Sequence record: OR805295.1
Direction: 5' to 3' (one strand)
Length of the DNA: 64,000 nt
In this document: piece after piece, positions 5,936 through 59,995 of the stretch
Layout: every line of letters begins with the position of its first letter
Position numbering within the stretch: the first letter of the stretch is position 1
The notes under the pieces: model-generated
Seen by the model: the letters and a program-made list of their open reading frames with translations, nothing else
The model's database searches: none
Told to the model about the DNA's origin: nothing
Translations under genes and position numbers: made by a program

Positions 5936-6009
5936 AATATAACCTAAAATAGCCAAAAAGTACAACTACAATGTTGGAAGGACGGCAGTATTATAAAAAA
6001 GGACATTTT

Positions 6010-6255
6010 ATGACAAAACCATTCGATATTTCTAAATTTAGAAAAGATATTACTAAAAGTATCACTGGCATTAGTACAGGATTTAATGACCCAACTATTT
6101 GGATTAGTACCGGCAACTATACTCTTAATTATCTCATTAGTAGCGACTTTAATAAAGGCGTACCTATGGGTAAAGTAACTATGTTTGCTGGCGAGTCGGG
6201 TTGTTTGCCTGAAACTGCTAAAGTGAAAATTAGACTATCTAAGAAGCAATCTTAA
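6010..6255 (+). CDS. uvsX: UvsX/RecA N-extein (64 aa) fused to a 17-aa split-intein N fragment (6202-6252)
   Basis: RecA N-terminus ISTGNYTLNYLIS...GKVTMFAGESG, then CLPETAKVKIRLSKKQS and a stop codon. Confidence 0.92.
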   Translation: MTKPFDISKFRKDITKSITGISTGFNDPTIWISTGNYTLNYLISSDFNKGVPMGKVTMFAGESGCLPETAKVKIRLSKKQS

Positions 6256-6264
6256 CTGTCCAGT

Positions 6265-6304
6265 GTCTCCGTCGAGGATAAATACTTTTATCTAAAACGG
6301 AGAC
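6265..6304 (+). promoter_or_regulatory. SD-sequestering hairpin containing a late promoter, upstream of the endonuclease gene
   Basis: GTCTCCGT 6265-72 pairs with ACGGAGAC 6297-6304, which includes the SD GGAG. Inner stem GATAAA/TTTATC; GATAAATA at 6277-84. Confidence 0.75.
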
Positions 6305-6307
6305 TTT

Positions 6308-7741
6308 ATGGGAAATTACAATGTTCTTTCTACAAAAAACTTTAAGAAGCTATGTAATGAGTTAAACATAGTAACGATATCAGAAAAGTACATTTCTGAT
6401 ATACGTAAGATAGAAGATTCTGCTAAGAGCAAAGTGGATTCTGCATCTCAGCGTATGATATTAACTATGATAACTGTGAAAGTTCCCGACTTATATGATG
6501 CATATAACAGATACTATCAGCTCAGAACAGATGGTATTAGTACAAAAACTCAAGACAGTATTTCTTATATTTTTGGAAAAGACTTCCTCGAATCTGTTAA
6601 TTTACTAATCAGTAATAGATATAAAACTGCATTCCGTAAAGGAATGACAGTGGAAGAGGCATTTATAACACGTAATAAAGACTTTTCCAATAATGGTGTG
6701 TATTATAACCAGATGACTGATAAGCAAAAGAAACGTTTATCATTATTGCTTAGTGTGTATACACCAGAAAGGTTGGAGTTTTATAAAAAGACAATTTCGT
6801 TTTTTATTAAGTTAGATTTGACTAATTATGCAGGAAGAATGAAAAGACTGATGAAACTGGGATCTAGTACGTCTTTATATGCTAGCGTATTACGGTATGG
6901 TAAATCTGTCGGAAAAAGCACACATTCATCTGTATCTGCGGTAAAGAGAAACTATTTGCCTACTTCGATACAATATTGGATGGCAAAGGGGTTTGATGAA
7001 GATACTGCATTAGTGAAGATAAACGAACATCAACAGAAAGCAAGTGCCATGTCTTCCAAAAAACTAAAAGGCACTAGCGAATACTCTGTTCGATCAGTTG
7101 CATATTGGATTAAAAACGGGTATAGCGAAGAAGAGGCAAAAGGGAAAGTATCTAATATACAGAATACTTGGAAAAATGTATCTCAAGAAGAGCGTGATCG
7201 AAGAATAGAATCGTGGATGACTACAATGAGTCTTAAAACAGACGAGGAGAAATCTTTGATAAACCTTAAAAAAACTCACAGCCCGGAAGGGATAATGGCA
7301 AGGACAAATTGCGATTATGATATTGCATTTAAGCAAAGCGTTGATTTTTTTAAGAAACGAAATAATTCTTCTAAAGTATCTCAAGAACTATTTTGGGGAA
7401 TTGCCGAGGATATCGATACCGATGGAGTTTACTTTTCTGAACTAAACTACGAATACCCTGTTATGGGGAAAATAGTAGATTTCTATGATTCTAAAAGCAA
7501 AACAGTAATCGAATTTTATGGAAACTTTTGGCATGCAGATAGTACATATACTGATGACACACTGATATATGGAAAAACTGCTAAAGAAATAAGAGAATCG
7601 GACATTTACAGAGAAACGTTAATTAGATCATCTGATTTGGTTAGTGATTTTATAGTAGTTTGGGAAAAGGACTTTAGGAAGAATCCGAAAGAAACAATTA
7701 AAAATTTAGTTAATATTTTAAATAATAAAAGGAAATTTTAA
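6308..7741 (+). mobile_element. Free-standing homing endonuclease (Vsr/EDxHD/DUF559-like) between the split-intein halves
   Basis: C-terminal IVDFYD...VIEFYGNFWHAD...IVVWEKD; repeated YWxxxG(Y/F)xE(E/D)xA segments; position inside the fractured uvsX. Confidence 0.8.
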
Positions 7742-7744
7742 TAA

Positions 7745-9016
7745 ATGGAATACATCGAAAAGGAAGTAACAGTTAGTGAACTGAAGTCTCTCTACAGTAG
7801 TAATGAATACGAAATTGAGTTAGACACACCAGATGGCTGGCAAAAACTGGGATCTTGGTTCGATAAAGGCCCTCTTAGTATGGTGACGGTAGAAACGCAG
7901 GATGGGTTAGTTACTAGATGTGCAGTAAACCATATGATCGAAGTGGTAGACGGATCGGAAACTTTTTGGACACTTGCAAAAGACTTGTACGAAGGCCAAC
8001 AAGTGCTTACTGTAAACGGTGTCTCAACAATTAGTTCTGTAACTGAAAGTGGCATCGAAGAATGTTTCGATTTCGAAATACTCCACGAAAATCATCGTTA
8101 CTATGGTGATGGATTCTCTTCTCACAATAGTGGCAAATCGTATATAGTATCAGGAAACATTGTAAAAGATGCACAAGAAAAGGGAATTTTTGTTGTATTA
8201 CTTGATTCAGAAAATGCACTCGACGAATCTTGGCTACATGCACTAGGTGTAGACACCGGACCGGAAAAAATGTTACGCATCTCTGTATCGATGATAGATG
8301 ATGTAGCAAAAATTATTAGTGATTTTGTTAAAGATTACAAGACTAATTATGCCGAACTACCTAACAATGATCGACCGAAGGTGCTTTTTGTTATTGACTC
8401 GCTCGGAATGTTATTGACACCAACGGAAACTGCACAATTTCAAAATGGTGATATGAAAGGAGATATGGGCAGGAAAGCAAAACAATTAAAAGCATTGATT
8501 TCTAACTGTACAAATATGTTCGGCAACTTAGACATAGGCCTTGTTTGTACTAACCATACATATGCATCTCAAGATTTATTTCAGCCCGACGCTGTAATTT
8601 CGGGTGGCAGCGGCGCAGTCTATGCCGCGTCAATTGTAGTGGCAATGCAAAAGTTAAAGTTAAAAGAAGACGAAGCAGGTAATAAAATTTCTGAAGTAGC
8701 TGGTATTCGTGCAGTATGTAAAGTTGTGAAATCTCGATATGCAAAGCCGTTTGAGACAGTAAAAGTAAATATTCCATATGATACAGGTATGAGTCCGATA
8801 TCGGGTCTATTTGACTTGTTTGAAAAAACAGGTAAACTTGTAAAACAAGGCAATAGATATAAGTACATAACCAAAGATGGTACCGAAATGCTGTATTATA
8901 GGAAAGAATGGAATGATTACGATAAACTAAAAGTAATTATGAATGAATTTACAGACGAAGACCTAGGCAATGTCGTAGAAGTGGAAGAGGGTCATTTAGA
9001 AGAGTTCGATGAATAA
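7745..9016 (+). CDS. uvsX: Split-intein C fragment (128 aa, 7745-8128) fused to the UvsX/RecA C-extein
   Basis: Intein blocks CAVNH, CFDFEI and SSHN, then +1 Ser: SGKS..., LLDSENALD, FVIDSLG, ISGGSG and KSRY RecA motifs. Confidence 0.93.
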   Translation: MEYIEKEVTVSELKSLYSSNEYEIELDTPDGWQKLGSWFDKGPLSMVTVETQDGLVTRCAVNHMIEVVDGSETFWTLAKDLYEGQQVLTVNGVSTISSVTESGIEECFDFEILHENHRYYGDGFSSHNSGKSYIVSGNIVKDAQEKGIFVVLLDSENALDESWLHALGVDTGPEKMLRISVSMIDDVAKIISDFVKDYKTNYAELPNNDRPKVLFVIDSLGMLLTPTETAQFQNGDMKGDMGRKAKQLKALISNCTNMFGNLDIGLVCTNHTYASQDLFQPDAVISGGSGAVYAASIVVAMQKLKLKEDEAGNKISEVAGIRAVCKVVKSRYAKPFETVKVNIPYDTGMSPISGLFDLFEKTGKLVKQGNRYKYITKDGTEMLYYRKEWNDYDKLKVIMNEFTDEDLGNVVEVEEGHLEEFDE

Positions 9017-10844
9017 ATTATGCGAAACAGATCGTATTAATATTATCAAATTACACTTCGATGATTTAAAATCTGTATCTGAATTAAAGAAAATATATGG
9101 AGTCTCTTATGATGTCATTAAAACCATCATAAGAGATGAAACGAATCGTCTGCCGTTGCAAGAAACTGATATAAAAATTTTGAAATTTAAAAAACTTGTT
9201 TCAAAGGAGTTGTTATTTGAATTACATGTAATTAAAAAACAATCATTTAATGAAATAAGAAAAACTTATAAGATTAATGAACTTCATTTAAAACAAGTGT
9301 TTAATGATTATGGAATACCAATTGAAAAGTGTTTATATACTGCTACTAACAAGAAGCGTAAAACAAAAAAGCCTGAAGATTTTACTAAAGACTTTTTCGA
9401 ACACTTAGTATATAACGAAAGACGAACAATTAGTTGGATAAAAAATAATTATAACTTTAATTTTGAAGAACTAAAACATCATTTAACACATTTAAAAATC
9501 GATTATACTAATTCGTTGCCACCTGCTGTAAAACATCAACAAGATAAAATATCTAGAGAAACTCTAGCAGAAGAATTAAAAATTAAATCTATTGTTGATA
9601 TAATAAATGAATACGGAATTTCTAGAACTTATGTAGAAAGCGTTATAAAAGAATACAATATACAGTATTTTACAAAACCGAAACATTCTATATTAAGTGG
9701 TAAAGAATCAGAAATTTACCGGATGTATTATGATGAATGTATGACTACATACCAAATAGCAGAAAATTTAGGAGTATGTCAATACACCATATGGAAAATA
9801 ATGGCAGATAACGGATGGAAAACACGAGAACCGATTAAAAAAATTGATTTGATTTGGAATGATATAAAAGAAGAAGTTGTTAAATTAATAGACAACGGTT
9901 ATACATTAGCTGCTTTATGTGAAAAATACGAAATAACATCTATTACTGAAAAGTTAATAGAAGAAGGTATAAAATATACAAAGGGAAATATTTCTTCTGG
10001 TCATGCAGAAATATCTGAATATGTGCGTTCATTGGGATTTAATGTAATCGACAATGATCGTACTATTATATTTCCGCGAGAAATTGATATTTTTATTCCC
10101 GAACTTAACATAGGAATAGAATACAACGGATTATATTTTCATAGCACACGAACAGAAGGAAATGTAACAAAGCATAGAGAAAAATATAGCATATGTAAAC
10201 AAAAAGGTATTCGTTTAATACAAATTTTTGAAGATGAATTTATTCATAAGAAAGAACTAGTAAAGAGAAAATTAGCGCACATTTTAGGAAAATCTAATAA
10301 TAAATGTTATGCAAGGAATTGTATAGTTAAAGAAATATCGGTAGCAGACAAACGAAATTTCTTTAAAAAATATCACATACAAGAAGATTCTGCATCCTCG
10401 TATGCATATGGATTATATTATGATAATGAATTAGTTTGTGCTATGTCTTTTCTTAAAAAGAAGAAATGTACAGAACTAGTTAGATATGCATCTTCTATGC
10501 ACGTGGTCGGCGGATTTTCTAAGTTGTTGAAATATTGCATTAATAATAACAAAATAGATGTTATAAACACATATGCTGATCTCAGATGGTCGAATCCGAC
10601 AAATAATGTATATGTAAACAATGGGTTTGATATACTGTATGAGACTGATTTTAATTACACTTATGTGAGTAAAGAGGATTTTTCAAAAAGGCTTAATAGG
10701 CAAAAATTTATGAAACACAAGTTGAAAAACATTTTATCAGATTTCGATAAATCATTAACAGAAGAAGAGAATATGAAAAATAATGGATTTTATCGAGTAT
10801 ACGATGCTGGCCATTTAAAATTGCAATATAAGGTTAATAAATGA
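9009..10844 (+). mobile_element. Putative homing endonuclease (Hef-like, PD-(D/E)xK) with multiple N-terminal HTH-like repeats
   Basis: EIDIFIPELNIGIEYNGLYFHS...LIQIFEDEF, then a YARNC...HIQ...VRYAS...GGFSKLL...YDAG module. Confidence 0.7.
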
Positions 10845-14516: not shown

Positions 14517-15224
14517 ATGCAAGCATCTAAGAAAAATAAAAAGGCAACATCGATGGCAAAGTGCGAGTTTTGTAGTAAAGAATTTAAGTCAGAACGAACA
14601 ATAGCTGCTCATTTGTGTGTTAAAAAGAAGAGGTTTGCAGAAAAAGACACAGTCGGGTCTAGACTGGGATTTAGGGTATTTCAGCGATTCTACGAACTAA
14701 CTACTTCTTCTAAAACACCTAAATCTTTTAGAGAATTTATTGATAGTAAATTTTATATAGATTTTGTTAAATTTGGAAGACACCTAATAGATATTAATCC
14801 TATTAACACAGATGAATACATAGATTTCATAATAAAGAACGCTATACCGCTGTCTGATTGGAAAAAAGACTATGTATATGTAAGATATCTTAAAGAATAT
14901 ACTCAGAAAGAACCTGCACAAAAAGCACTAGAACGAACTATAATCGAGATGGGTACTTGGTGTACTGAAAATAATGTAGATATTGTAGATTTTTTTGAAA
15001 AAGTTAATACAGTAGAGGCAGTATATCTTATTAAATCAGGAAAGCTTAGTCCGTGGGTGTTATATCTGGCATCTTCTTCTGATAAATTGTGGGTTAGAAT
15101 AAATGAAGAACAAGAAAAATTTATTCAAACTGCTGTAGATTTTGACTGGTGGCAAAAGAAATTTATTGCAAATAAGGATGATGTTGACTTTATAGTGTCT
15201 GTATTGACAGAGGCTAAGTTGTAA
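14517..15224 (+). CDS. Conserved protein with an N-terminal C2H2/C2HC-type zinc finger
   Basis: CEFCSKEFKSERTIAAHLC. Confidence 0.65.
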   Translation: MQASKKNKKATSMAKCEFCSKEFKSERTIAAHLCVKKKRFAEKDTVGSRLGFRVFQRFYELTTSSKTPKSFREFIDSKFYIDFVKFGRHLIDINPINTDEYIDFIIKNAIPLSDWKKDYVYVRYLKEYTQKEPAQKALERTIIEMGTWCTENNVDIVDFFEKVNTVEAVYLIKSGKLSPWVLYLASSSDKLWVRINEEQEKFIQTAVDFDWWQKKFIANKDDVDFIVSVLTEAKL

Positions 15225-15225
15225 T

Positions 15226-15828
15226 ATGGCAAAAGTAGTTACTGATGTTGATATTGACGTAGCAGATAGGTTAACAGTTTTGTCTGGACTACAACATATA
15301 TCTGCTAAATTAGACGGAGTAGGAAAGAAACATTTATCTGGTGTATATTTTCAACCCATTCCGTTTGATCCGGAACAAAACATGAGCAACATAGATTATA
15401 AAGTTGCAGAAGAATTAGGCTACATGAAGATTGATCTTCTTAACGTGAGTATATACGAACAAGTTAGATCAGAGGAACATCTAAAGAAATTAATAGATAA
15501 AGAACCCAACTGGTCTTATTTTGAACATAAACAGATAGTTCAAAATTTATTTCATTTAGGAAATTATGCTGATCTAGCAGTAGGAATGAAACCGAAAAGT
15601 GTAGAACAGTTAGCAATGTTGCTGGCTGTTATACGTCCGAGTAAGTATCATTTACAATATAAACCTTGGGATATTATTGCCAAAACTGTGTGGGATAAGC
15701 CCAGCGACGGGTCATATCATTTTAAAAAAGCACATGCCATTAGTTATGCACTTGCAATTGTTGTTCAGTTGAATTTATTAGAAGAAGAAGCAGAACAAGA
15801 ACCCGATCCATTTAAGTTATTTTCCTGA
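15226..15828 (+). CDS. dnaE: Miniature DNA polymerase III alpha (family C), C-terminal catalytic half
   Basis: In 200 aa: TDVDID (PDxDxD), KHLSGVY (HAxGV), KIDLL (KxDxL), LAVIRP (LxRPG), HFKKAHAISYA (FNKSHxxxY). Confidence 0.85.
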   Translation: MAKVVTDVDIDVADRLTVLSGLQHISAKLDGVGKKHLSGVYFQPIPFDPEQNMSNIDYKVAEELGYMKIDLLNVSIYEQVRSEEHLKKLIDKEPNWSYFEHKQIVQNLFHLGNYADLAVGMKPKSVEQLAMLLAVIRPSKYHLQYKPWDIIAKTVWDKPSDGSYHFKKAHAISYALAIVVQLNLLEEEAEQEPDPFKLFS

Positions 15829-16210
15829 TTAAAGATACTTGTCGTCTTTTTATTCTCTTTTTGAGCATATTGTTAAGAGAAGTACATGGTCCGAAAACTA
15901 TTTTTATATCTTTGTTTACTAGGGTTTTTAGGCAATATCTAAATTCTGCCATTTCGTTTGGCATGAATATATTTATTGGTAATATCCTAGAAGATTCCCA
16001 CCACCAACAGTCACCGCATTGAAGAAATATATCTTTGTGTTGACTGTTTTTTAATGATTTAAAATCATAAAAACTTATATATTTGTCATCCGAATTTTGA
16101 ATAATTCCTATATAGAAATTTTCTAAGTGTTGTATGCCACTCAAAAATGGAAATTTTTCAGATAATTCTGCTAACTCTTGATCTATTGTATTATTATTTG
16201 TGTTGTCCAT
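15812..16210 (-). CDS. Conserved hypothetical protein
   Basis: 132-aa minus-strand ORF (KFPFLS...WWWESSRILPINIF) with AATAAATA upstream on the minus strand (16230-37). Confidence 0.7.
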   Translation of the reverse strand: MDNTNNNTIDQELAELSEKFPFLSGIQHLENFYIGIIQNSDDKYISFYDFKSLKNSQHKDIFLQCGDCWWWESSRILPINIFMPNEMAEFRYCLKTLVNKDIKIVFGPCTSLNNMLKKRIKRRQVSLIRKIT

Positions 16211-39737: not shown

Positions 39738-40427
39738 GTGTCGTTAAACAAAACTAAAACTGATGCCGAACTAGGCAAAAAAGTACAGCAATATTTAATC
39801 CAACAAGGAGTAGAAACTCCTATGCAAGAGCAGACTCTAAACGTTAAAGAGCGGATAGATAAAATTGAATCTCATTTTGTTGAAATTATGAATGCACTTG
39901 CGTTGGATCTTTCTGACGATAGTCTTGCAGAAACGCCTCGCCGAGTAGCAAAAATGTATGTATCTGAGATATTCTATGGGTTGGATTATGAGGCATTTCC
40001 TAAATGCACCACTATTGAAAATAAATTTAATGCAAATGAAATGGTCTTAGTAAAAGATATAGATTTATATTCTCAGTGCGAACATCATATTTTACCAATA
40101 ATTTCTGGATCATCTTCTGGTCGAGGTGGAATATCGGTTGCTTATATTCCTAAAAATAAAGTAATAGGTCTCTCTAAATTAAATAGAGTGGCAGAATTTT
40201 TCTGCAAGCGACCTCAAGTTCAAGAACGACTCACATTGCAAATATTTCATGCATTACAGTATATTCTGGAAACAGACGATGTTGCTGTTTTGATTAACGG
40301 AAGGCATCTGTGTGTGGAATCTAGGGGCGTAGAAGATACAAGTTCGAGTACGATAACTTCTAAATTAAGTGGTGCATTTAGCAACGATCCTGCCACCCGT
40401 GCAGAATTTATGTCTCTTGTAAAATAA
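39738..40427 (+). CDS. folE: GTP cyclohydrolase I
   Basis: ETPRRVAKM, SQCEHHILP, GLSKLNR, RPQVQERL, HLCVESRG; GTG start with AGGAGG SD. Confidence 0.96.
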   Translation: MSLNKTKTDAELGKKVQQYLIQQGVETPMQEQTLNVKERIDKIESHFVEIMNALALDLSDDSLAETPRRVAKMYVSEIFYGLDYEAFPKCTTIENKFNANEMVLVKDIDLYSQCEHHILPIISGSSSGRGGISVAYIPKNKVIGLSKLNRVAEFFCKRPQVQERLTLQIFHALQYILETDDVAVLINGRHLCVESRGVEDTSSSTITSKLSGAFSNDPATRAEFMSLVK

Positions 40428-40431
40428 CAAA

Positions 40432-40464
40432 AACTACTATGGATAGATACTATCCATAGTAGTT
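40432..40464. repeat. Perfect 15-bp inverted repeat between folE and queD
   Basis: AACTACTATGGATAG-ATA-CTATCCATAGTAGTT, no U tract. Confidence 0.9.
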
Positions 40465-40494
40465 ACACATAGCATATTAATAAGGAATATAAAA

Positions 40495-41013
40495 TTGTGG
40501 CAGATTAATAAAAGTTTCAGTTTTGCATATGCTCACAGAGTCCATAATCAACACTTAGATGCAGATTTAGTTGAAGACACCAAATGCAAATGCAGGCATT
40601 TACACGGACATACAGGTAAAGTAGTTATTCATTTAACTGGAACTTCTTTAGTAAACGGTATGGTAACTGATTTTAAGCATTTAGGTTTTCTTAAAAAATT
40701 TATAGATGACGTAATCGACCATAAGTTTATTATAGATGCAAACGATCCTAATTTTAGTAAGATAACCAATGCATCTAAATATTCTACTATAAGTTTTGAG
40801 CACTATGGAATATTCGATACATCTGAAGAGACAGTAGAACACGAAAAGGAACATGCAGATAGTTTTGTAATAGTAGATTTTGTTCCTACTGCAGAAAATT
40901 TAGCTAAATGGATTTGGGAATATGCTGAAAGCATTTTAGAACAAAAAGGTATAACTGTTTCTAAAGTAGAATGGTGGGAAACTGATAAAGCTTGTGCAAC
41001 ATATATTGCATAA
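40495..41013 (+). CDS. queD: 6-carboxytetrahydropterin synthase / PTPS family, copy 1
   Basis: YAHRVH, CKCRHLHGH, MVTDF, DHKF, PTAENLA, WWET. Confidence 0.88.
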   Translation: MWQINKSFSFAYAHRVHNQHLDADLVEDTKCKCRHLHGHTGKVVIHLTGTSLVNGMVTDFKHLGFLKKFIDDVIDHKFIIDANDPNFSKITNASKYSTISFEHYGIFDTSEETVEHEKEHADSFVIVDFVPTAENLAKWIWEYAESILEQKGITVSKVEWWETDKACATYIA

Positions 41014-41030
41014 TATAAAGGTAGATATAA

Positions 41031-42257
41031 ATGTCGAAAGAAACATGCTCTTATTGCAATAAAGGCAAAGATGATGTGTCTAAGTTGTTTCGTAGCCCTG
41101 CTAAATATGGATCAAATGTATATATATGTGACCAGTGTGTAACTCAGTGCAACAATTTTTTAGAAACTGCTGAAACAAATGATCGGGAATCTAATAAATT
41201 AGAAATAAAATACACACCTGAAGAACTAAAGGAATTGCTAGATAAAGACATTGTAGGGCAAGATCACGCAAAAGAATTACTAAGTCTAGCAGTGTATAAT
41301 CATTATAAACGGGTAAACTATAACACTACTGAACATGATGTAGAGTTATCTAAATCTAACATAATGCTACTGGGACCTTCAGGCAGCGGTAAGACATTTT
41401 TAATATCTAGTATATCTAAATTGTTAAACATACCTTTTGTTTCTGTAGATTCTACTTCGCTAACAGAGGCAGGATATGTCGGAGATCATGTAGAGACTAT
41501 ATTTACTAGATTAATCGCAGAAGCAAATGGTGACATAGAACTAGCGCAACGTGGAATCGTATTTATAGATGAAATAGATAAGAAACGTTCTAAAAAAGGA
41601 ACAAATTCTGCAGGATCTGATGTTTCCGGCGAAGGCGTCCAACAGTCTTTACTTCGGGTGCTAGAAGGAACAACGATTAAATTAGAACTAAATTCTAACA
41701 GTATGTTTAGTCCTAGACAGGAAATTATGTTTGACACAACTAACGTTTTGTTTATAGTTGGCGGCGCATTTATAGGATTAGATGCAGTAATAAATAAAAG
41801 ACTTAGTTCTACTAAATCTCAAATGGGATTTGGTTCCGAAGCTGGTAAACCCATAGAAGGTAGTTTATTCTATGTAGAACCGGAAGATTTGTATACATAC
41901 GGTTTTATAAGAGAATTTGTAGGGAGATTTCCTGTTCTTATTGCGTTTCATGATGTAACAGAGACTATGCTTCGTCGAATTCTAGTAGAGCCTAAAAGTT
42001 CTATACTTAAACAATATCAAACTATGTTTAAATTAGATAACATTGAATTAGAATTCGATGAAGATTTTATAAAATCTGTTGCTACTACAGCGTTTAATAG
42101 GAAAACAGGCGCTCGTGGTTTAAGAACTATTTTAGAAAAAGAACTATCTAGTATAGCATATAGATTGCCTTCTATAAGACGAGAAGGGTTTAGCAAGATT
42201 ATTATACACGAACTAGGAAAACATAATTTCATAAAAGGGCAAAATGAAGACATTTAA
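41031..42257 (+). CDS. clpX: ATP-dependent Clp protease ATPase subunit ClpX
   Basis: CSYC...CDQC zinc-binding domain, GPSGSGKT, GYVG, IDEIDK, VSGEGVQQSLL, GARGLR. Confidence 0.95.
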   Translation: MSKETCSYCNKGKDDVSKLFRSPAKYGSNVYICDQCVTQCNNFLETAETNDRESNKLEIKYTPEELKELLDKDIVGQDHAKELLSLAVYNHYKRVNYNTTEHDVELSKSNIMLLGPSGSGKTFLISSISKLLNIPFVSVDSTSLTEAGYVGDHVETIFTRLIAEANGDIELAQRGIVFIDEIDKKRSKKGTNSAGSDVSGEGVQQSLLRVLEGTTIKLELNSNSMFSPRQEIMFDTTNVLFIVGGAFIGLDAVINKRLSSTKSQMGFGSEAGKPIEGSLFYVEPEDLYTYGFIREFVGRFPVLIAFHDVTETMLRRILVEPKSSILKQYQTMFKLDNIELEFDEDFIKSVATTAFNRKTGARGLRTILEKELSSIAYRLPSIRREGFSKIIIHELGKHNFIKGQNEDI

Positions 42258-42450
42258 TATAATTACTGGTCTTACTGTAGAAGTAAGACACGATAACTTT
42301 AACCAAGCACTTAGAACTTTTACTAAAAAGGTTCAAAATTCAGGAAAATTAAAAGAAGTTCGAGAACGCGAATTCTATGAAAAGCCTTCTGTAAAAAAGA
42401 CAAAAGCTAAAAAAGCAGCAATTCAACGCCAGAAAAAGAAAAAAATATAA
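42244..42450 (+). CDS. rpsU: Ribosomal protein bS21
   Basis: VEVR...ALRTFTKK...EVREREFYEKPS. Confidence 0.88.
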   Translation: MKTFNIITGLTVEVRHDNFNQALRTFTKKVQNSGKLKEVREREFYEKPSVKKTKAKKAAIQRQKKKKI

Positions 42451-42452
42451 TA

Positions 42453-42788
42453 ATGGATCTTTGCAGGATTTTAAATAATGAACTTATGTTTTGCAGAAAT
42501 CGCAGGAATAAACTCTATTATGGCCTACGGCAATTGAATAAAGTTGACATCCCTGTAGATCCTGCAGATTCTTTACTTATTTCCAGCATAAAAATGGATA
42601 TAGAACAGCTCCAATCGTATAAAGATGCTATATCCGAATGCAGTAGACTTGAACAACGTATAATCTGTATAGATAAAACTATGCAGTATATCCGTCGGTA
42701 TTGCAATCATAAGTTTGTGTATCACAATACTAATTATCATACAAATACAGATGCAGAAAAATGCATTTATTGCGGATTAATAATTTAA
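42453..42788 (+). CDS. Hypothetical protein
   Basis: 111 aa; C-terminal CNH...CIYC. Confidence 0.55.
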   Translation: MDLCRILNNELMFCRNRRNKLYYGLRQLNKVDIPVDPADSLLISSIKMDIEQLQSYKDAISECSRLEQRIICIDKTMQYIRRYCNHKFVYHNTNYHTNTDAEKCIYCGLII

Positions 42789-42789
42789 T

Positions 42790-43260
42790 ATGGCATATTT
42801 TTCAACTAAGAGATTTGGACCTATTTCCACTGGCCATCGTCAATGGAAAGATACGGGTCATTGCAGCAGAATACACGGATACGGAAGAACAGTGAAGATT
42901 GTTTTTTCTGCTACTACATTAGATGATAAATTGTGGGTAGTAGATTTCGGTGGATTGAAAGATTTTAGGAAATGGCTGGAAGAACAATGGGATCATAATG
43001 TTTTAGTTGCATCTGACGATCCCAAGTTAAATATCCTTAAACAAATGGAACAAGAAGGTCTAGTTAAATTAAATATAATGGATGTTAAAAAAGGCCATGG
43101 TCCCGGAATAGAAGGTTCATGTAAGCATCTGTTTGACTATTTGAATCCCATTATAGAAAAACAATCTGGCGGAAGATGTTGGGTCCATAGTATAGAAATA
43201 TGGGAACACGAAAACAATTCCGCTATATACGAAACATATAAGTCAACATTTAAAAGATAA
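42790..43260 (+). CDS. queD: QueD/PTPS-family protein, copy 2 (HGY variant)
   Basis: TGHRQW, HCSRIHGY, WVVDFGGLK, DH, EHENNSA. Confidence 0.8.
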   Translation: MAYFSTKRFGPISTGHRQWKDTGHCSRIHGYGRTVKIVFSATTLDDKLWVVDFGGLKDFRKWLEEQWDHNVLVASDDPKLNILKQMEQEGLVKLNIMDVKKGHGPGIEGSCKHLFDYLNPIIEKQSGGRCWVHSIEIWEHENNSAIYETYKSTFKR

Positions 43261-50372: not shown

Positions 50373-51146
50373 ATGACACCACGTTTAAAGGAATTACTAG
50401 AATCACTTATAATTTTAGATACAGAAACTACACATTTAGATACTCGTGTAGCAGAAATAATAGAATTAGGTATAGCGTCTTATACTAACAAATGGACTTA
50501 TAGTAGTGAATTATTTAAACCCAGAGTCAATCATGCGCAAATAACTCCTAAAATAAGTTCTATAACTGGCATAACAGATCGTATGGTAGAAGGAAAACCT
50601 ACTTTTGCTGATGTAGTCGACCAATACAAATCTATTACAAACTGCCAACTAATAGTTGCACACAATGCTCCGTATGATAAAAAGGTACTAGAGAGATATA
50701 ACATAGCATCTAGCACTAATTGGTTGTGTACTTTAAAACTTGCACGATATGCATATCAAACTGATCCTACTTTTGAAGAATTTAAATTATCTTATCTAAG
50801 ATATAAATTAATGTTAGATATTCCTGACGATTTCGTAGCGCATAGAGCAGGAGAAGATGCATATATGTGCGGTGTATTATTAGAACGAATAGTAACCGAT
50901 TTAGAGTCTAAGAATAAATTAGATAGTGATATGCCGTATGCAGATCAACTTATAGAAATATCTAATAAGCCGTTAATGCTTTCGTCTATGCCATTTGGCA
51001 AACATAAAGATAAACCCTTAGATGAAGTTCCGATGGACTATTGGATTTGGGCATTAAATAATTTAGATGCATTAGACGAAACAAAACCCGAATATAATAG
51101 AGACTTAGCGTATACATTAGAACAATATTTGAGCGACAAGATATAA
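50373..51146 (+). CDS. DEDDh 3'-5' exonuclease (DnaQ/ExoX-like) with C-terminal MPFGKH domain
   Basis: LDTETT, HNAPYD, HRAGEDA, MPFGKHK...DYWIW. Confidence 0.88.
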   Translation: MTPRLKELLESLIILDTETTHLDTRVAEIIELGIASYTNKWTYSSELFKPRVNHAQITPKISSITGITDRMVEGKPTFADVVDQYKSITNCQLIVAHNAPYDKKVLERYNIASSTNWLCTLKLARYAYQTDPTFEEFKLSYLRYKLMLDIPDDFVAHRAGEDAYMCGVLLERIVTDLESKNKLDSDMPYADQLIEISNKPLMLSSMPFGKHKDKPLDEVPMDYWIWALNNLDALDETKPEYNRDLAYTLEQYLSDKI

Positions 51147-58112: not shown

Positions 58113-58820
58113 ATGTTTGCTGACGTACAAGGGTTTTATTCTTTTAAAAGAAAATTTAAAACACACGTTCTTACTTCTGTATTAAAAGAAACTGAATGGG
58201 AAATTATAATTGGATTCGTTCCTGCAAAGGATGCAAGCAACGGAGAAGATTTAATTGATTTTGAAGTTCAAAAAAATATAATAGATTACTGGATTTCTAA
58301 TTACGTAGAAGGCAGTATTATCGTCGATATGAGCGATACTAGAATTTCTATGTTGTATGATATAGCAGAAAATAACATAATAGGTGTTCCTAGTTTTCCT
58401 AAAGATTTAAAAACACTAGCAATGGTTTTTCATTCTAAGATTTCATCTATAACAGATGGTAAGCTATCTATAGGTGACATTATTATATCAGACGATAGTA
58501 ATTTTAGTTACACATTCGGAAAACATGTAGATGAAATATATGATCTTCCTACAATAGACGATATGTTTCCTAATGAAGATGAAAAACCTATATGGGACGT
58601 GCCGTGGTGGGATAGGGTTGATGTAGATACATTTGATTATGTTCCTGATTTAGAAAATCGTACATTAGAAGAAGTACAAATGTCTGTTTGTACAAGACAT
58701 GTGTTAAATGATATTAACGATAAGTTCGAAGCTGCAATAAAAGAAGAATTGGGTATAAATGTAGAAACTGAAGACAATGTTGTAGACATAGTTGATGTTT
58801 TAAATGAACGACAAATATAA
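58113..58820 (+). CDS. Conserved hypothetical protein (acidic)
   Basis: 235 aa; PWWDRVDVDTFD; overlaps the start of the dnaE N-half. Confidence 0.65.
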   Translation: MFADVQGFYSFKRKFKTHVLTSVLKETEWEIIIGFVPAKDASNGEDLIDFEVQKNIIDYWISNYVEGSIIVDMSDTRISMLYDIAENNIIGVPSFPKDLKTLAMVFHSKISSITDGKLSIGDIIISDDSNFSYTFGKHVDEIYDLPTIDDMFPNEDEKPIWDVPWWDRVDVDTFDYVPDLENRTLEEVQMSVCTRHVLNDINDKFEAAIKEELGINVETEDNVVDIVDVLNERQI

Positions 58821-59313
58821 TAGAAAAGAAATAACTATAACAACAGGCATAAATATCCTTTTGCAAGGGAACCAGCTGGGAGATCCACTCTTTGTTGACA
58901 ATGAAGACATAAACAAGTATAATATGCACGTAGAACAAGTATTAGGGTTGCATAAACTTAATACGACGAAACACTTAACTTGTTCTGTTGATGAATTTCA
59001 TGAAAAAATGTCTTCAGAATGGTTTATGCCACCGGAATTTAAAAATATAGATATAGATTCTTTTATATTAAATTTATGTGACACTGATGCACAAAAAGAA
59101 AGAGTATTAATGGAACTGAAACTCTTTCAAGAACGCAGTTTATACAATATGCTAAGATTTATGATATATTTTGTATCATATATGAGGGAAAATTGCCTTA
59201 TCTGGGGTGTGGGTCGCGGGTCTAGTGTTGCGTCTTATGTATTATTTTTAATAGGCGTGCATAAAGTAGATTCACTAAAATATAATTTAGATATAAAAGA
59301 ATTTCTAAAATAA
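58804..59313 (+). CDS. dnaE: Miniature DNA polymerase III alpha (family C), N-terminal palm half
   Basis: RVLMELKLF...LIWGVGRGSSVASYVLFLIGVHKVDSLKYNLDIKEFLK matches DnaE GPGRGSxAGSLVAYxLxITxxDPLxYxLLFERFLN. Confidence 0.85.
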   Translation: MNDKYNRKEITITTGINILLQGNQLGDPLFVDNEDINKYNMHVEQVLGLHKLNTTKHLTCSVDEFHEKMSSEWFMPPEFKNIDIDSFILNLCDTDAQKERVLMELKLFQERSLYNMLRFMIYFVSYMRENCLIWGVGRGSSVASYVLFLIGVHKVDSLKYNLDIKEFLK

Positions 59314-59668: not shown

Positions 59669-59995
59669 ATGAATATAATACCACTTCATAACAATATTAT
59701 TGTAACTAATTTTAAAAAAGGCGAACGCACGGTAGGCGGTATTATTTTTACAGATGATAACGGTAAGTCACACGGCATCCGCGCTCGATGGGCACAAGTA
59801 TCCCATATAAGAGAAGATCAAAAAGATACATTTGTTGTAGGCCAATGGGTGTTAATTAAGCACGGTCGTTGGTCCCGTCCAGTACACACTACAGATCAAA
59901 ATGTATATTACTGTGCTGAAATAGATTCTATTTTATTGGTATCTGATGAAGAGCCAGAAGACAATATAATAGTAGAAACACGAGTTTATAATTAA
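59669..59995 (+). CDS. groES: Co-chaperonin GroES-like (gp31-type)
   Basis: IIPLHNNIIV...GERTVGGII...VGQWVLI...DSILLV. Confidence 0.8.
   Translation: MNIIPLHNNIIVTNFKKGERTVGGIIFTDDNGKSHGIRARWAQVSHIREDQKDTFVVGQWVLIKHGRWSRPVHTTDQNVYYCAEIDSILLVSDEEPEDNIIVETRVYN

Follow-up and report, generated by a model that had tools for sequence, protein, structure and literature searches.

The closest described relatives of the genes considered here belong to the T4-like, gp23-capsid jumbo phages of group 2.2 (Rak2/121Q/PBECO4/Atu_ph07/PA5oct). Using comparative genomics, Iyer, Anantharaman, Krupovic, Koonin and Aravind described in these phages a "minimal, split DNA polymerase III alpha" (Iyer et al., 2021; Viruses 13:63; PMC7824862). 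In the passages of that paper that treat the enzyme, it is made as two standalone proteins from distant genes, the N-terminal protein binding the nucleoside triphosphate (NTP) and the C-terminal protein binding Mg2+ and template. No other Pol III domain accompanies them, and a family-B polymerase is encoded in the same genome. The enzyme, it was suggested there, might cooperate with the family-B polymerase in the synthesis of one strand or in repair, and might serve as a model of an ancestral state. Here, a pair of open reading frames (ORFs) is analyzed that lies in the first 64,000 nucleotides of the genome of Pseudomonas phage Paride (OR805295.1); this whole stretch is called the window. The two ORFs very probably encode a two-chain miniature Pol III alpha.

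In every respect tested, the Paride pair is the same as the system of those passages (PHROG 11127 and PHROG 11778), sharing with it each of the features just listed: two standalone proteins, distant genes, the division of binding tasks, the missing Pol III domains, the family-B polymerase and the phage group. Nothing essential differs; the PA5oct-like clade adds an FKLFS tail, and its family-B polymerase is interrupted by an intein and an endonuclease gene. The split enzyme is, on those passages, already known, its architecture, split and distribution having been published in 2021, and the novelty implied by an initial annotation of this DNA falls away. What is added here is a residue-level mapping to DnaE, the precision of the break over 160 environmental loci, the apparent absence of the thumb, rare natural single-chain fusions, and an acidic C-terminal tail specific to one clade. 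Single-chain versions, three of which are given below from metagenomes, find no mention in the passages cited.

The two genes are as follows.

58804-59313, + strand: N-half of the putative split minimal Pol III alpha, 169 aa, Paride_0087 (evidence: PF07733, PHROG 11127, DnaE alignment, AlphaFold2 (AF2) model)
15226-15828, + strand: C-half of the putative split minimal Pol III alpha, 200 aa, Paride_0017 (evidence: PHROG 11778, PHROG 405, collinear family profile, AF2 model)

The window is identical, base for base, to positions 1-64000 of OR805295.1, a genome of 287,267 bp, in which both ORFs are found by tblastn with 100% matches at identical coordinates. Both ORFs and their motifs stand where the initial annotation put them, with the sequences it gave. 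Paride is a PA5oct-like jumbo myovirus (Arenbergviridae, Wroclawvirus), placed in group 2.2 of Iyer et al. by its own authors (PMC10761892). The two genes are separated by 42,976 nt. The GenBank record of Paride and PHROGs call both products "DNA polymerase," contrary to the expectation of the initial annotation that pipelines would label each half a fragment. Several other records, that of PA5oct among them, annotate the halves as hypothetical; neither is marked in the PA5oct record as a virion component seen by mass spectrometry.

Full-length DnaE (E. coli; PDB 2hnh, 2hpi, 5lew) shares with the Paride pair a Pol-beta-like palm, with the GRGS, DxDxD and KxD elements in the same order, and the RP(G)P and FxKSHxxxYA motifs. 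DnaE is, however, one chain of about 1160 aa, whereas the Paride pair is two chains that together reach 369 aa. The cyanobacterial DnaE of the split-intein type (Ssp/Npu) is likewise a C-family polymerase from two distant genes. There, however, the pieces are spliced to give a full-length chain, and the break is at another position of DnaE; the Paride pair has no intein and is broken inside the catalytic palm. For the multi-piece RNA polymerases of phiKZ-like jumbo phages, assembly has been shown biochemically, while that of the Paride pair is a prediction. Those RNA polymerases are of the double-psi beta-barrel class and come from another phage group. They resemble the Paride pair in presenting a cellular-type polymerase core as separate polypeptides, as passages of the same comparative study describe (PMC7824862).

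The two halves and the DnaE active site

The N-half is recognized directly as part of DnaE. Its residues 95-168 match positions 21-94 of the Pfam model PF07733 (DNA_pol3_alpha) with 35.5 bits (cut-off 23.9; E 1.1e-8). Ten NCBIfam DnaE models also match (best E 1.5e-8), as does PHROG 11127 (E 6.6e-46). Residues 98-168 align with residues 322-392 of E. coli DnaE, and with 383-454 of the Thermus aquaticus (Taq) and 333-406 of the Mycobacterium tuberculosis (Mtb) enzymes. The part of the palm that binds the nucleotide is formed by residues ~95-169. Ahead of it, residues 1 to ~90 form a small alpha/beta region for which little or no DnaE counterpart is detectable, a clear counterpart being absent for the first ~50-90 residues. 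The protein runs ...WGVGRGSSVASY...LKYNLDIKEFLK, closing with FLK, and is followed by a genuine TAA stop and then by AAGGAG, the ribosome-binding site of the next gene. Its AF2 model has a mean predicted local distance difference test score (pLDDT) of 83.8, and the six best fold matches found by Foldseek in the PDB are all Pol III alpha; with E 4.4e-2 and low TM-scores, these are taken as corroboration only.

The C-half begins MAKVVTDVDIDVADR and contains KHLSGVY, KIDLL, LAVIRP and HFKKAHAISYA. Its motifs follow the order of DnaE (DxDxD, KxD, RP, FKKxHxxxYA), corresponding to the palm strands that bind metal and to fingers that have been shortened. No Pfam or NCBIfam model matches it alone. 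It is matched by PHROG 11778 ("DNA polymerase," E 1.7e-63) and by PHROG 405, a full-length DnaE-type family of 1190 positions, in which positions 579-679 correspond to residues 52-140 (E 7.1e-7). A search of PDB sequences with the single C-half sequence gives chance matches only (adnectin, cytochrome bc1 subunit 6), and a family profile is required. With such a profile, built from 29 relatives, the only PDB matches are Pol III alpha chains, in four collinear pieces. The first equates TDVDIDVADR with PDIDIDFDDR of Mtb and DFDVDF of E. coli; the second, GYxKIDLL with GLLKMDFLG of Mtb DnaE1; the third, IRPxK with YRPGP; and the fourth, YxFKKSHAxxYA with residues 752-767 of E. coli and 773-788 of Mtb. 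The AF2 model (pLDDT 90.3) has Pol III alpha as its 14 best Foldseek matches in the PDB. Neither half comes anywhere near the NCBIfam cut-offs for whole DnaE proteins (434-1806 bits), as is expected of proteins the size of fragments.

The motifs that carry this mapping are the following.

59212-59223, + strand: GRGS triphosphate-binding motif of the N-half, G137-R138-G139-S140 (E. coli G361-S364), aligned to GPGRGS of E. coli, Taq and Mtb DnaE
15244-15258, + strand: DxDxD strand of the C-half, D7-V-D9-I-D11 (E. coli D401/D403/D405), which bears two of the three catalytic carboxylates and corresponds to PDIDID in Mtb DnaE1 and DFDVD in E. coli
15427-15435, + strand: KxD strand, K68-I-D70 (E. 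coli K553/D555), with the third catalytic Asp, equivalent to GLLKMDFLG of Mtb DnaE1 and inside the PHROG 405 match
15634-15645, + strand: fingers "RPGP" motif, R137-P138-S-K140 (E. coli ~640-643), aligned to E. coli 595-641 and Mtb 567-664
15721-15750, + strand: fingers motif F166-KKAHAISYA-175 (E. coli F756-NKSHSAAYA-765; H170 = H760), from the family profile alignment

These are also the places where the family does not vary. Across 32 N-half family members, W134-GVGRGS-140 is invariant, a stretch that covers R362-G363-S364 of E. coli. Across the 29 C-halves, D7, D9, I10, D11, R15, K68, D70, R137, P138, K140, F166, K167 and H170 are invariant. The active-site set of G139 and S140 from one protein and D7, D9 and D70 from the other, equivalent to G363, S364, D401, D403 and D555 of E. 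coli, is therefore invariant in the family. H760 of DnaE, the counterpart of H170, is presumably a sugar-discriminating active-site residue, which we treat as a lead only.

The break separates the GRGS nucleotide-binding element from the DxD strand, inside the catalytic palm, and its position is the same in all family members examined. Counted along E. coli DnaE, K169 at the end of the N-half corresponds to N393, and M1 of the C-half to about 395, or to 397 in an alternative register; the halves thus abut to within 1-3 residues, depending on the register. All 32 aligned N-halves finish EFLK/R, four of them with two further residues, the last residue in Paride being this conserved K/R. All 29 C-halves start no more than six residues ahead of DxDxD, the Paride protein exactly six. 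The environmental collection IMG/VR has at least 588 C-half and at least 596 N-half loci, of which the best 80 of each were used to check the break point and the neighborhood. In 75 of the 80 N-half loci the reading frame stops exactly where the profile ends, and in the other five within 1-2 residues of that point; no long upstream extension of the C-half reading frame is seen in its 80. Because the termini are fully DnaE-homologous, they leave no room for an N-intein (~100 aa) or a C-intein (~35 aa), and no Pfam intein model matches either half. The initial annotation, which had the halves abutting with neither gap nor overlap, free of inteins, with the catalytic half opening at the DxDxD motif and all three catalytic Asp residues retained, is sustained on each point, with the small offsets just given.

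Much of DnaE is absent. The pair spans approximately residues 320-790 of the E. coli protein, and the C-half alone about 395-790; the domain limits of that protein are reportedly those of Lamers and colleagues in 2006. Relative to E. coli DnaE, about 90 residues of thumb and about 90 residues of mid-fingers have been deleted from the C-half. D11 and K68 are separated by 57 residues, as against ~150 in E. coli, and the AF2 model builds this interval as beta strands, so that the thumb appears to be missing from the pair, a point beyond those of the initial annotation. The ~110 mid-finger residues of E. coli are represented by 22. Neither half matches PF02811, the PHP domain, and residues 1-320 of E. 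coli DnaE have no counterpart in the 287,267-nt Paride genome. The pair also has no counterpart of the beta-clamp motif, the (HhH)2 region, the OB domain or the tau-binding domain. Searches of the whole Paride genome (tblastn and phmmer with E. coli DnaE, and both half profiles) found no full-length or other DnaE-like ORF. Thus, Pfam and the genome-wide DnaE search agree with the initial annotation that the PHP, clamp-binding and OB domains are gone, and the full-length dnaE that it named as a possible source of both halves was not found.

Co-occurrence, fusions and conservation

If the two proteins make one enzyme, they should be found together. By tblastn, the N-half alone and the C-half alone each recover 96 phage records, from the same genera. 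Co-occurrence itself was measured by tblastn with a fused relative as the query. This query finds 186 places in 96 phage records, and in 90 of the 96 both halves are present at separate places. Six records have a single place, and among the five of them that were listed one is a partial genome; in none of the 96 does one place cover the whole fused query. The C-half also has relatives in the Alishewanella phages Slicko01 and Slickus01, whose genomes (141 kb) are well under the 200-kb limit for "jumbo" phages; with the divergent fused query, each gives one place.

As standalone genes, the halves are never neighbors. PBECO4-like phages have them ~31 kb apart, Atu_ph07 and Phosso 182-224 kb, and the partner lies within 3 kb at none of the 80 C-half and none of the 80 N-half loci from IMG/VR (160 in total). 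These two lists of best 80 do not overlap and so cannot be used for co-occurrence.

Fused versions do exist, rarely. An exhaustive profile search gave 551 clusters at 50% identity; nearly all have proteins of ~190-200 aa, and one has 375 aa (P0313). Its residues 80-180 are the N-half (44% identity, E 3e-25) and its residues 189-374 the C-half (40% identity, E 5e-37). Two further fused clusters (P0391 and P0392), 78-81% identical, come from other samples, making three independent natural fusions of 375-376 aa, all metagenomic. The linker in these clusters reads EFIK-DNKEGIYNIA-DFDID. DnaE models cross this junction unbroken (PF07733 positions 12-121, E 4.8e-16; NF004226 positions 304-420, E 4.6e-13). 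Of all the evidence that the C-half takes up DnaE exactly where the N-half leaves off, this unbroken alignment is statistically the strongest. The natural fusions, with DnaE models aligned across the junction, thus speak for the halves being parts of a single enzyme.

The fused gene occupies the C-half locus (metagenome contig L007), with the PHROG 11637 and PHROG 14467 genes downstream, as they are there. In a tree, unrooted and without an outgroup, the fused C-part is nested in a clade of 13 standalone C-halves with 95 in the Shimodaira-Hasegawa-like approximate likelihood ratio test (SH-aLRT). Judged by this nesting, the fused gene is probably a secondary fusion, joining two parts that already cooperated. 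The heterodimer proposed by the initial annotation, which had also suggested examining co-occurrence, thus gains indirect support from both the fusions and the 90 records with both halves.

The family of split polymerases is large and old. Relatives of both halves are present in Rak2, 121Q, PBECO4, Atu_ph07 and XacN1. At 90% identity there are more than 1000 C-half clusters (1050) and more than 5500 N-half clusters (5542). The excess of N-half clusters was set aside as a sign of N-halves without partners, because the search uses shared 5-residue words, and the invariant stretch of the N-half is much longer. Between Paride and PA5oct, the C-half gene has nine synonymous and no non-synonymous codon changes; the N-half gene has two of each, the non-synonymous ones at unconserved positions. 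The neutral evolution that the initial annotation considered is not what these counts and the invariant active-site residues indicate.

Activity and role

A mechanism follows from the division of the motifs. The N-half would supply the GRGS triphosphate-binding element, and the C-half would supply the DxDxD/KxD metal-binding strands and the fingers. Neither half alone would have a complete active site. The two proteins would associate without a covalent link, and the complex would be a template-directed polymerase dependent on deoxynucleoside triphosphates (dNTPs). Low processivity would be expected of the complex alone, because it has no thumb, clamp-binding or OB domain; a proofreading domain is also absent. 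Taking co-occurrence, fusions and motifs together, we consider it likely that the two ORFs are two subunits of one enzyme with polymerase activity. Given the invariant residues of the active site and fingers, we also favor, if with somewhat less assurance, an activity as a templated DNA polymerase.

Several observations tell against this reading. No experimental work, whether biochemical, genetic or at the level of expression, was found in the literature for any family member. Matches of the C-half alone to solved DnaE structures are weak (profile E 0.045; Foldseek E 2.6e-3, with low TM-scores); the low TM-scores and weak Foldseek E-values of both halves arise from the large deletions. At the position of E. 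coli R390 the N-half has E166, a nearly invariant Glu, so that the suspicion in the initial annotation that R390 is not clearly kept was right. Template-directed synthesis is, of course, not guaranteed in a protein from which the thumb and most of the parts that bind the DNA duplex are absent. Finally, the position of the genes near replication genes is weak evidence, as the whole region is a replication module.

The loss of the DNA-holding parts (thumb, (HhH)2/beta-binding region, OB domain) and of a conserved R390 would also fit a nucleotidyltransferase that is not a templated polymerase: a terminal transferase, a modifying or tailing enzyme for primers or RNA, or the producer of a nucleotide signal or decoy directed against host defence. 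The Pol-beta-like nucleotidyltransferase superfamily includes many non-templated enzymes, as passages of the comparative study also relate (PMC7824862). Against such an enzyme, RP..K and FKKxHxxxYA are kept invariant in the fingers, and both loci are within the replication module, with conserved gene order. In DnaE, these two motifs are in the region that handles the template and the incoming dNTP. On this balance, a non-templated activity is unlikely.

It is very improbable that the halves are non-catalytic leftovers of dnaE, whether decaying or reused, possibly separately, in a structural or regulatory function within the replisome. Each piece alone is, to be sure, without a complete active site, and several records call the halves hypothetical. 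Leftovers would not, however, be expected to hold their catalytic and substrate-binding residues invariant over hundreds of divergent clusters, to show only synonymous changes in the C-half between Paride and PA5oct, or to co-occur and be found as natural fusions; nor does the Paride genome have a full-length dnaE from which they might come. Post-translational joining of the halves through a split intein, as happens in cyanobacteria, is extremely improbable: although the family-B polymerase of the same genome does use an intein (reported for phage MIJ3; PMC6892783), the N-half stops at EFLK in DnaE-homologous sequence, the C-half starts six residues before DxDxD, and neither matches a Pfam intein model.

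What a templated two-chain polymerase would do in the cell is a guess, made from gene position, and is the weakest step of the argument. The initial annotation had advised looking for a family-B polymerase elsewhere in the genome, and one of T4 type is present beyond the window at 87,883-93,109 (Pfam DNA_pol_B_exo1 and DNA_pol_B). It is divided over three ORFs: an N-part with an intein N-splicing region at its end, a separate 560-aa "homing endonuclease," and a C-part with an intein C-splicing region at its start (Pfam Intein_splicing). The same arrangement in the sister phage MIJ3 was reported as a split intein (PMC6892783). Within the window are genes for a gp32-like single-stranded DNA-binding protein, UvsX/RecA, a UvsW-like helicase, a primase, a DnaB-like helicase, a DnaQ/RNase T-like exonuclease and a gp44-like clamp loader. 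The C-half gene lies between the UvsW-like helicase and the primase with the DnaB-like helicase. In both Paride and the E. coli phage PBECO4, the order at this locus is helicase ... C-half, convergent small ORF, "structural" ORF, primase, DnaB-like helicase; at the other locus it is N-half, an ORF of ~113 aa, a GroES-like gene, clamp loader.

In such a setting, the complex might serve a T4-like replisome beside the family-B polymerase, performing short-patch synthesis. Candidate jobs are the extension of primers with hand-off, the synthesis of one strand, and repair; the initial annotation had put forward primer extension, repair or priming as possible roles. In the first of these candidate jobs, primers made by the primase would be extended before being handed off; DnaE acts in this way for PolC in Bacillus, as does Pol alpha in eukaryotes. 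That group 2.2 jumbo phages run a hybrid replisome, with a defined job for a C-family mini-polymerase of two chains and no proofreading beside a T4-type family-B polymerase, is a tentative proposal, and we would sooner bet against it than for it.

The stakes are nonetheless considerable. If true, the hybrid replisome would be the first known natural one to combine B- and C-family polymerases. If the pair is active, it would be by far the smallest C-family polymerase, with a Pol-beta-like active site assembled from two proteins; it would show how little of the bacterial replicative polymerase is needed as a catalytic core, with a bearing on C-family origins. It would also mean that a large and widespread group of phages, including the therapy candidates PA5oct and Paride, combines B- and C-family polymerases. 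The natural 375-aa fusions offer a ready single-chain form.

Neighboring genes and other observations

Two further features lie at the 3' end of the C-half gene.

15781-15825, + strand: acidic C-terminal tail of the C-half closing PDPFKLFS, in the PA5oct-like clade only (3 of 120 family clusters)
15812-16210, - strand: convergent 132-aa ORF, PHROG 11637, conserved, sharing 17 nt with the C-half gene at its 3' end (context only)

The tail is, speculatively, a candidate for binding the sliding clamp. Metagenomic close relatives of the PA5oct-like C-half end DDIFSLFF(E), and the Paride family-B polymerase ends HFDSLFGW, loosely like PDPFKLFS. The FKLF of the tail differs, however, from the FDSLF of the family-B polymerase, and most family members have no such tail. 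The PHROG 11637 gene is also found directly after the fused gene in contig L007. Compared by position, an ORF stands at the same place in PBECO4, and after the fused gene in another contig (L006).

On the other side of the C-half gene, the ORF at 14517-15224 stops 1 nt before the C-half ATG. It belongs to PHROG 11058, and its residues 15-33 weakly match a zinc finger of the C2H2 type; GenBank starts it at 14553, 36 nt later. Near the N-half, the GroES/Cpn10-like gene (59669-59995; Pfam Cpn10, E 1.7e-4) lies between the N-half and the clamp loader, and the PBECO4 gene at that position is annotated "head morphogenesis."

A standalone 3'-5' exonuclease of the DnaQ/RNase T type, with a PF12843-like C-terminal domain, is encoded at 50373-51146. 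It is conserved over its full length in PBECO4 (30% identity, E 2e-38), where its gene is ~4 kb upstream of the C-half. From its sequence, it could be a proofreader for the PHP-less mini Pol III; equally, it could be a DexA-like nuclease.

The UvsX/RecA gene looks fractured, over window positions 5971-10844. A 94-aa "UvsX-like" ORF (5971-6255) is followed by a 477-aa ORF without a family match (6308-7741), a 423-aa ORF whose RecA match begins at residue 125 (7745-9016), and a 611-aa "homing endonuclease" rich in helix-turn-helix elements (9009-10844). This may be another invasion of a replication or recombination gene by an intein or endonuclease.

GenBank marks a "CRISPR" repeat region at 158,126-158,490 of the Paride genome, beyond the window, among very small ORFs. 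A GTP cyclohydrolase gene, two QueD-like genes and a gene for ribosomal protein S21 lie at 39822-43260, with a QueE-like gene at 98.7 kb. As annotated, the cyclohydrolase, QueD and QueE genes suggest a nucleotide metabolism of the 7-deazaguanine type.

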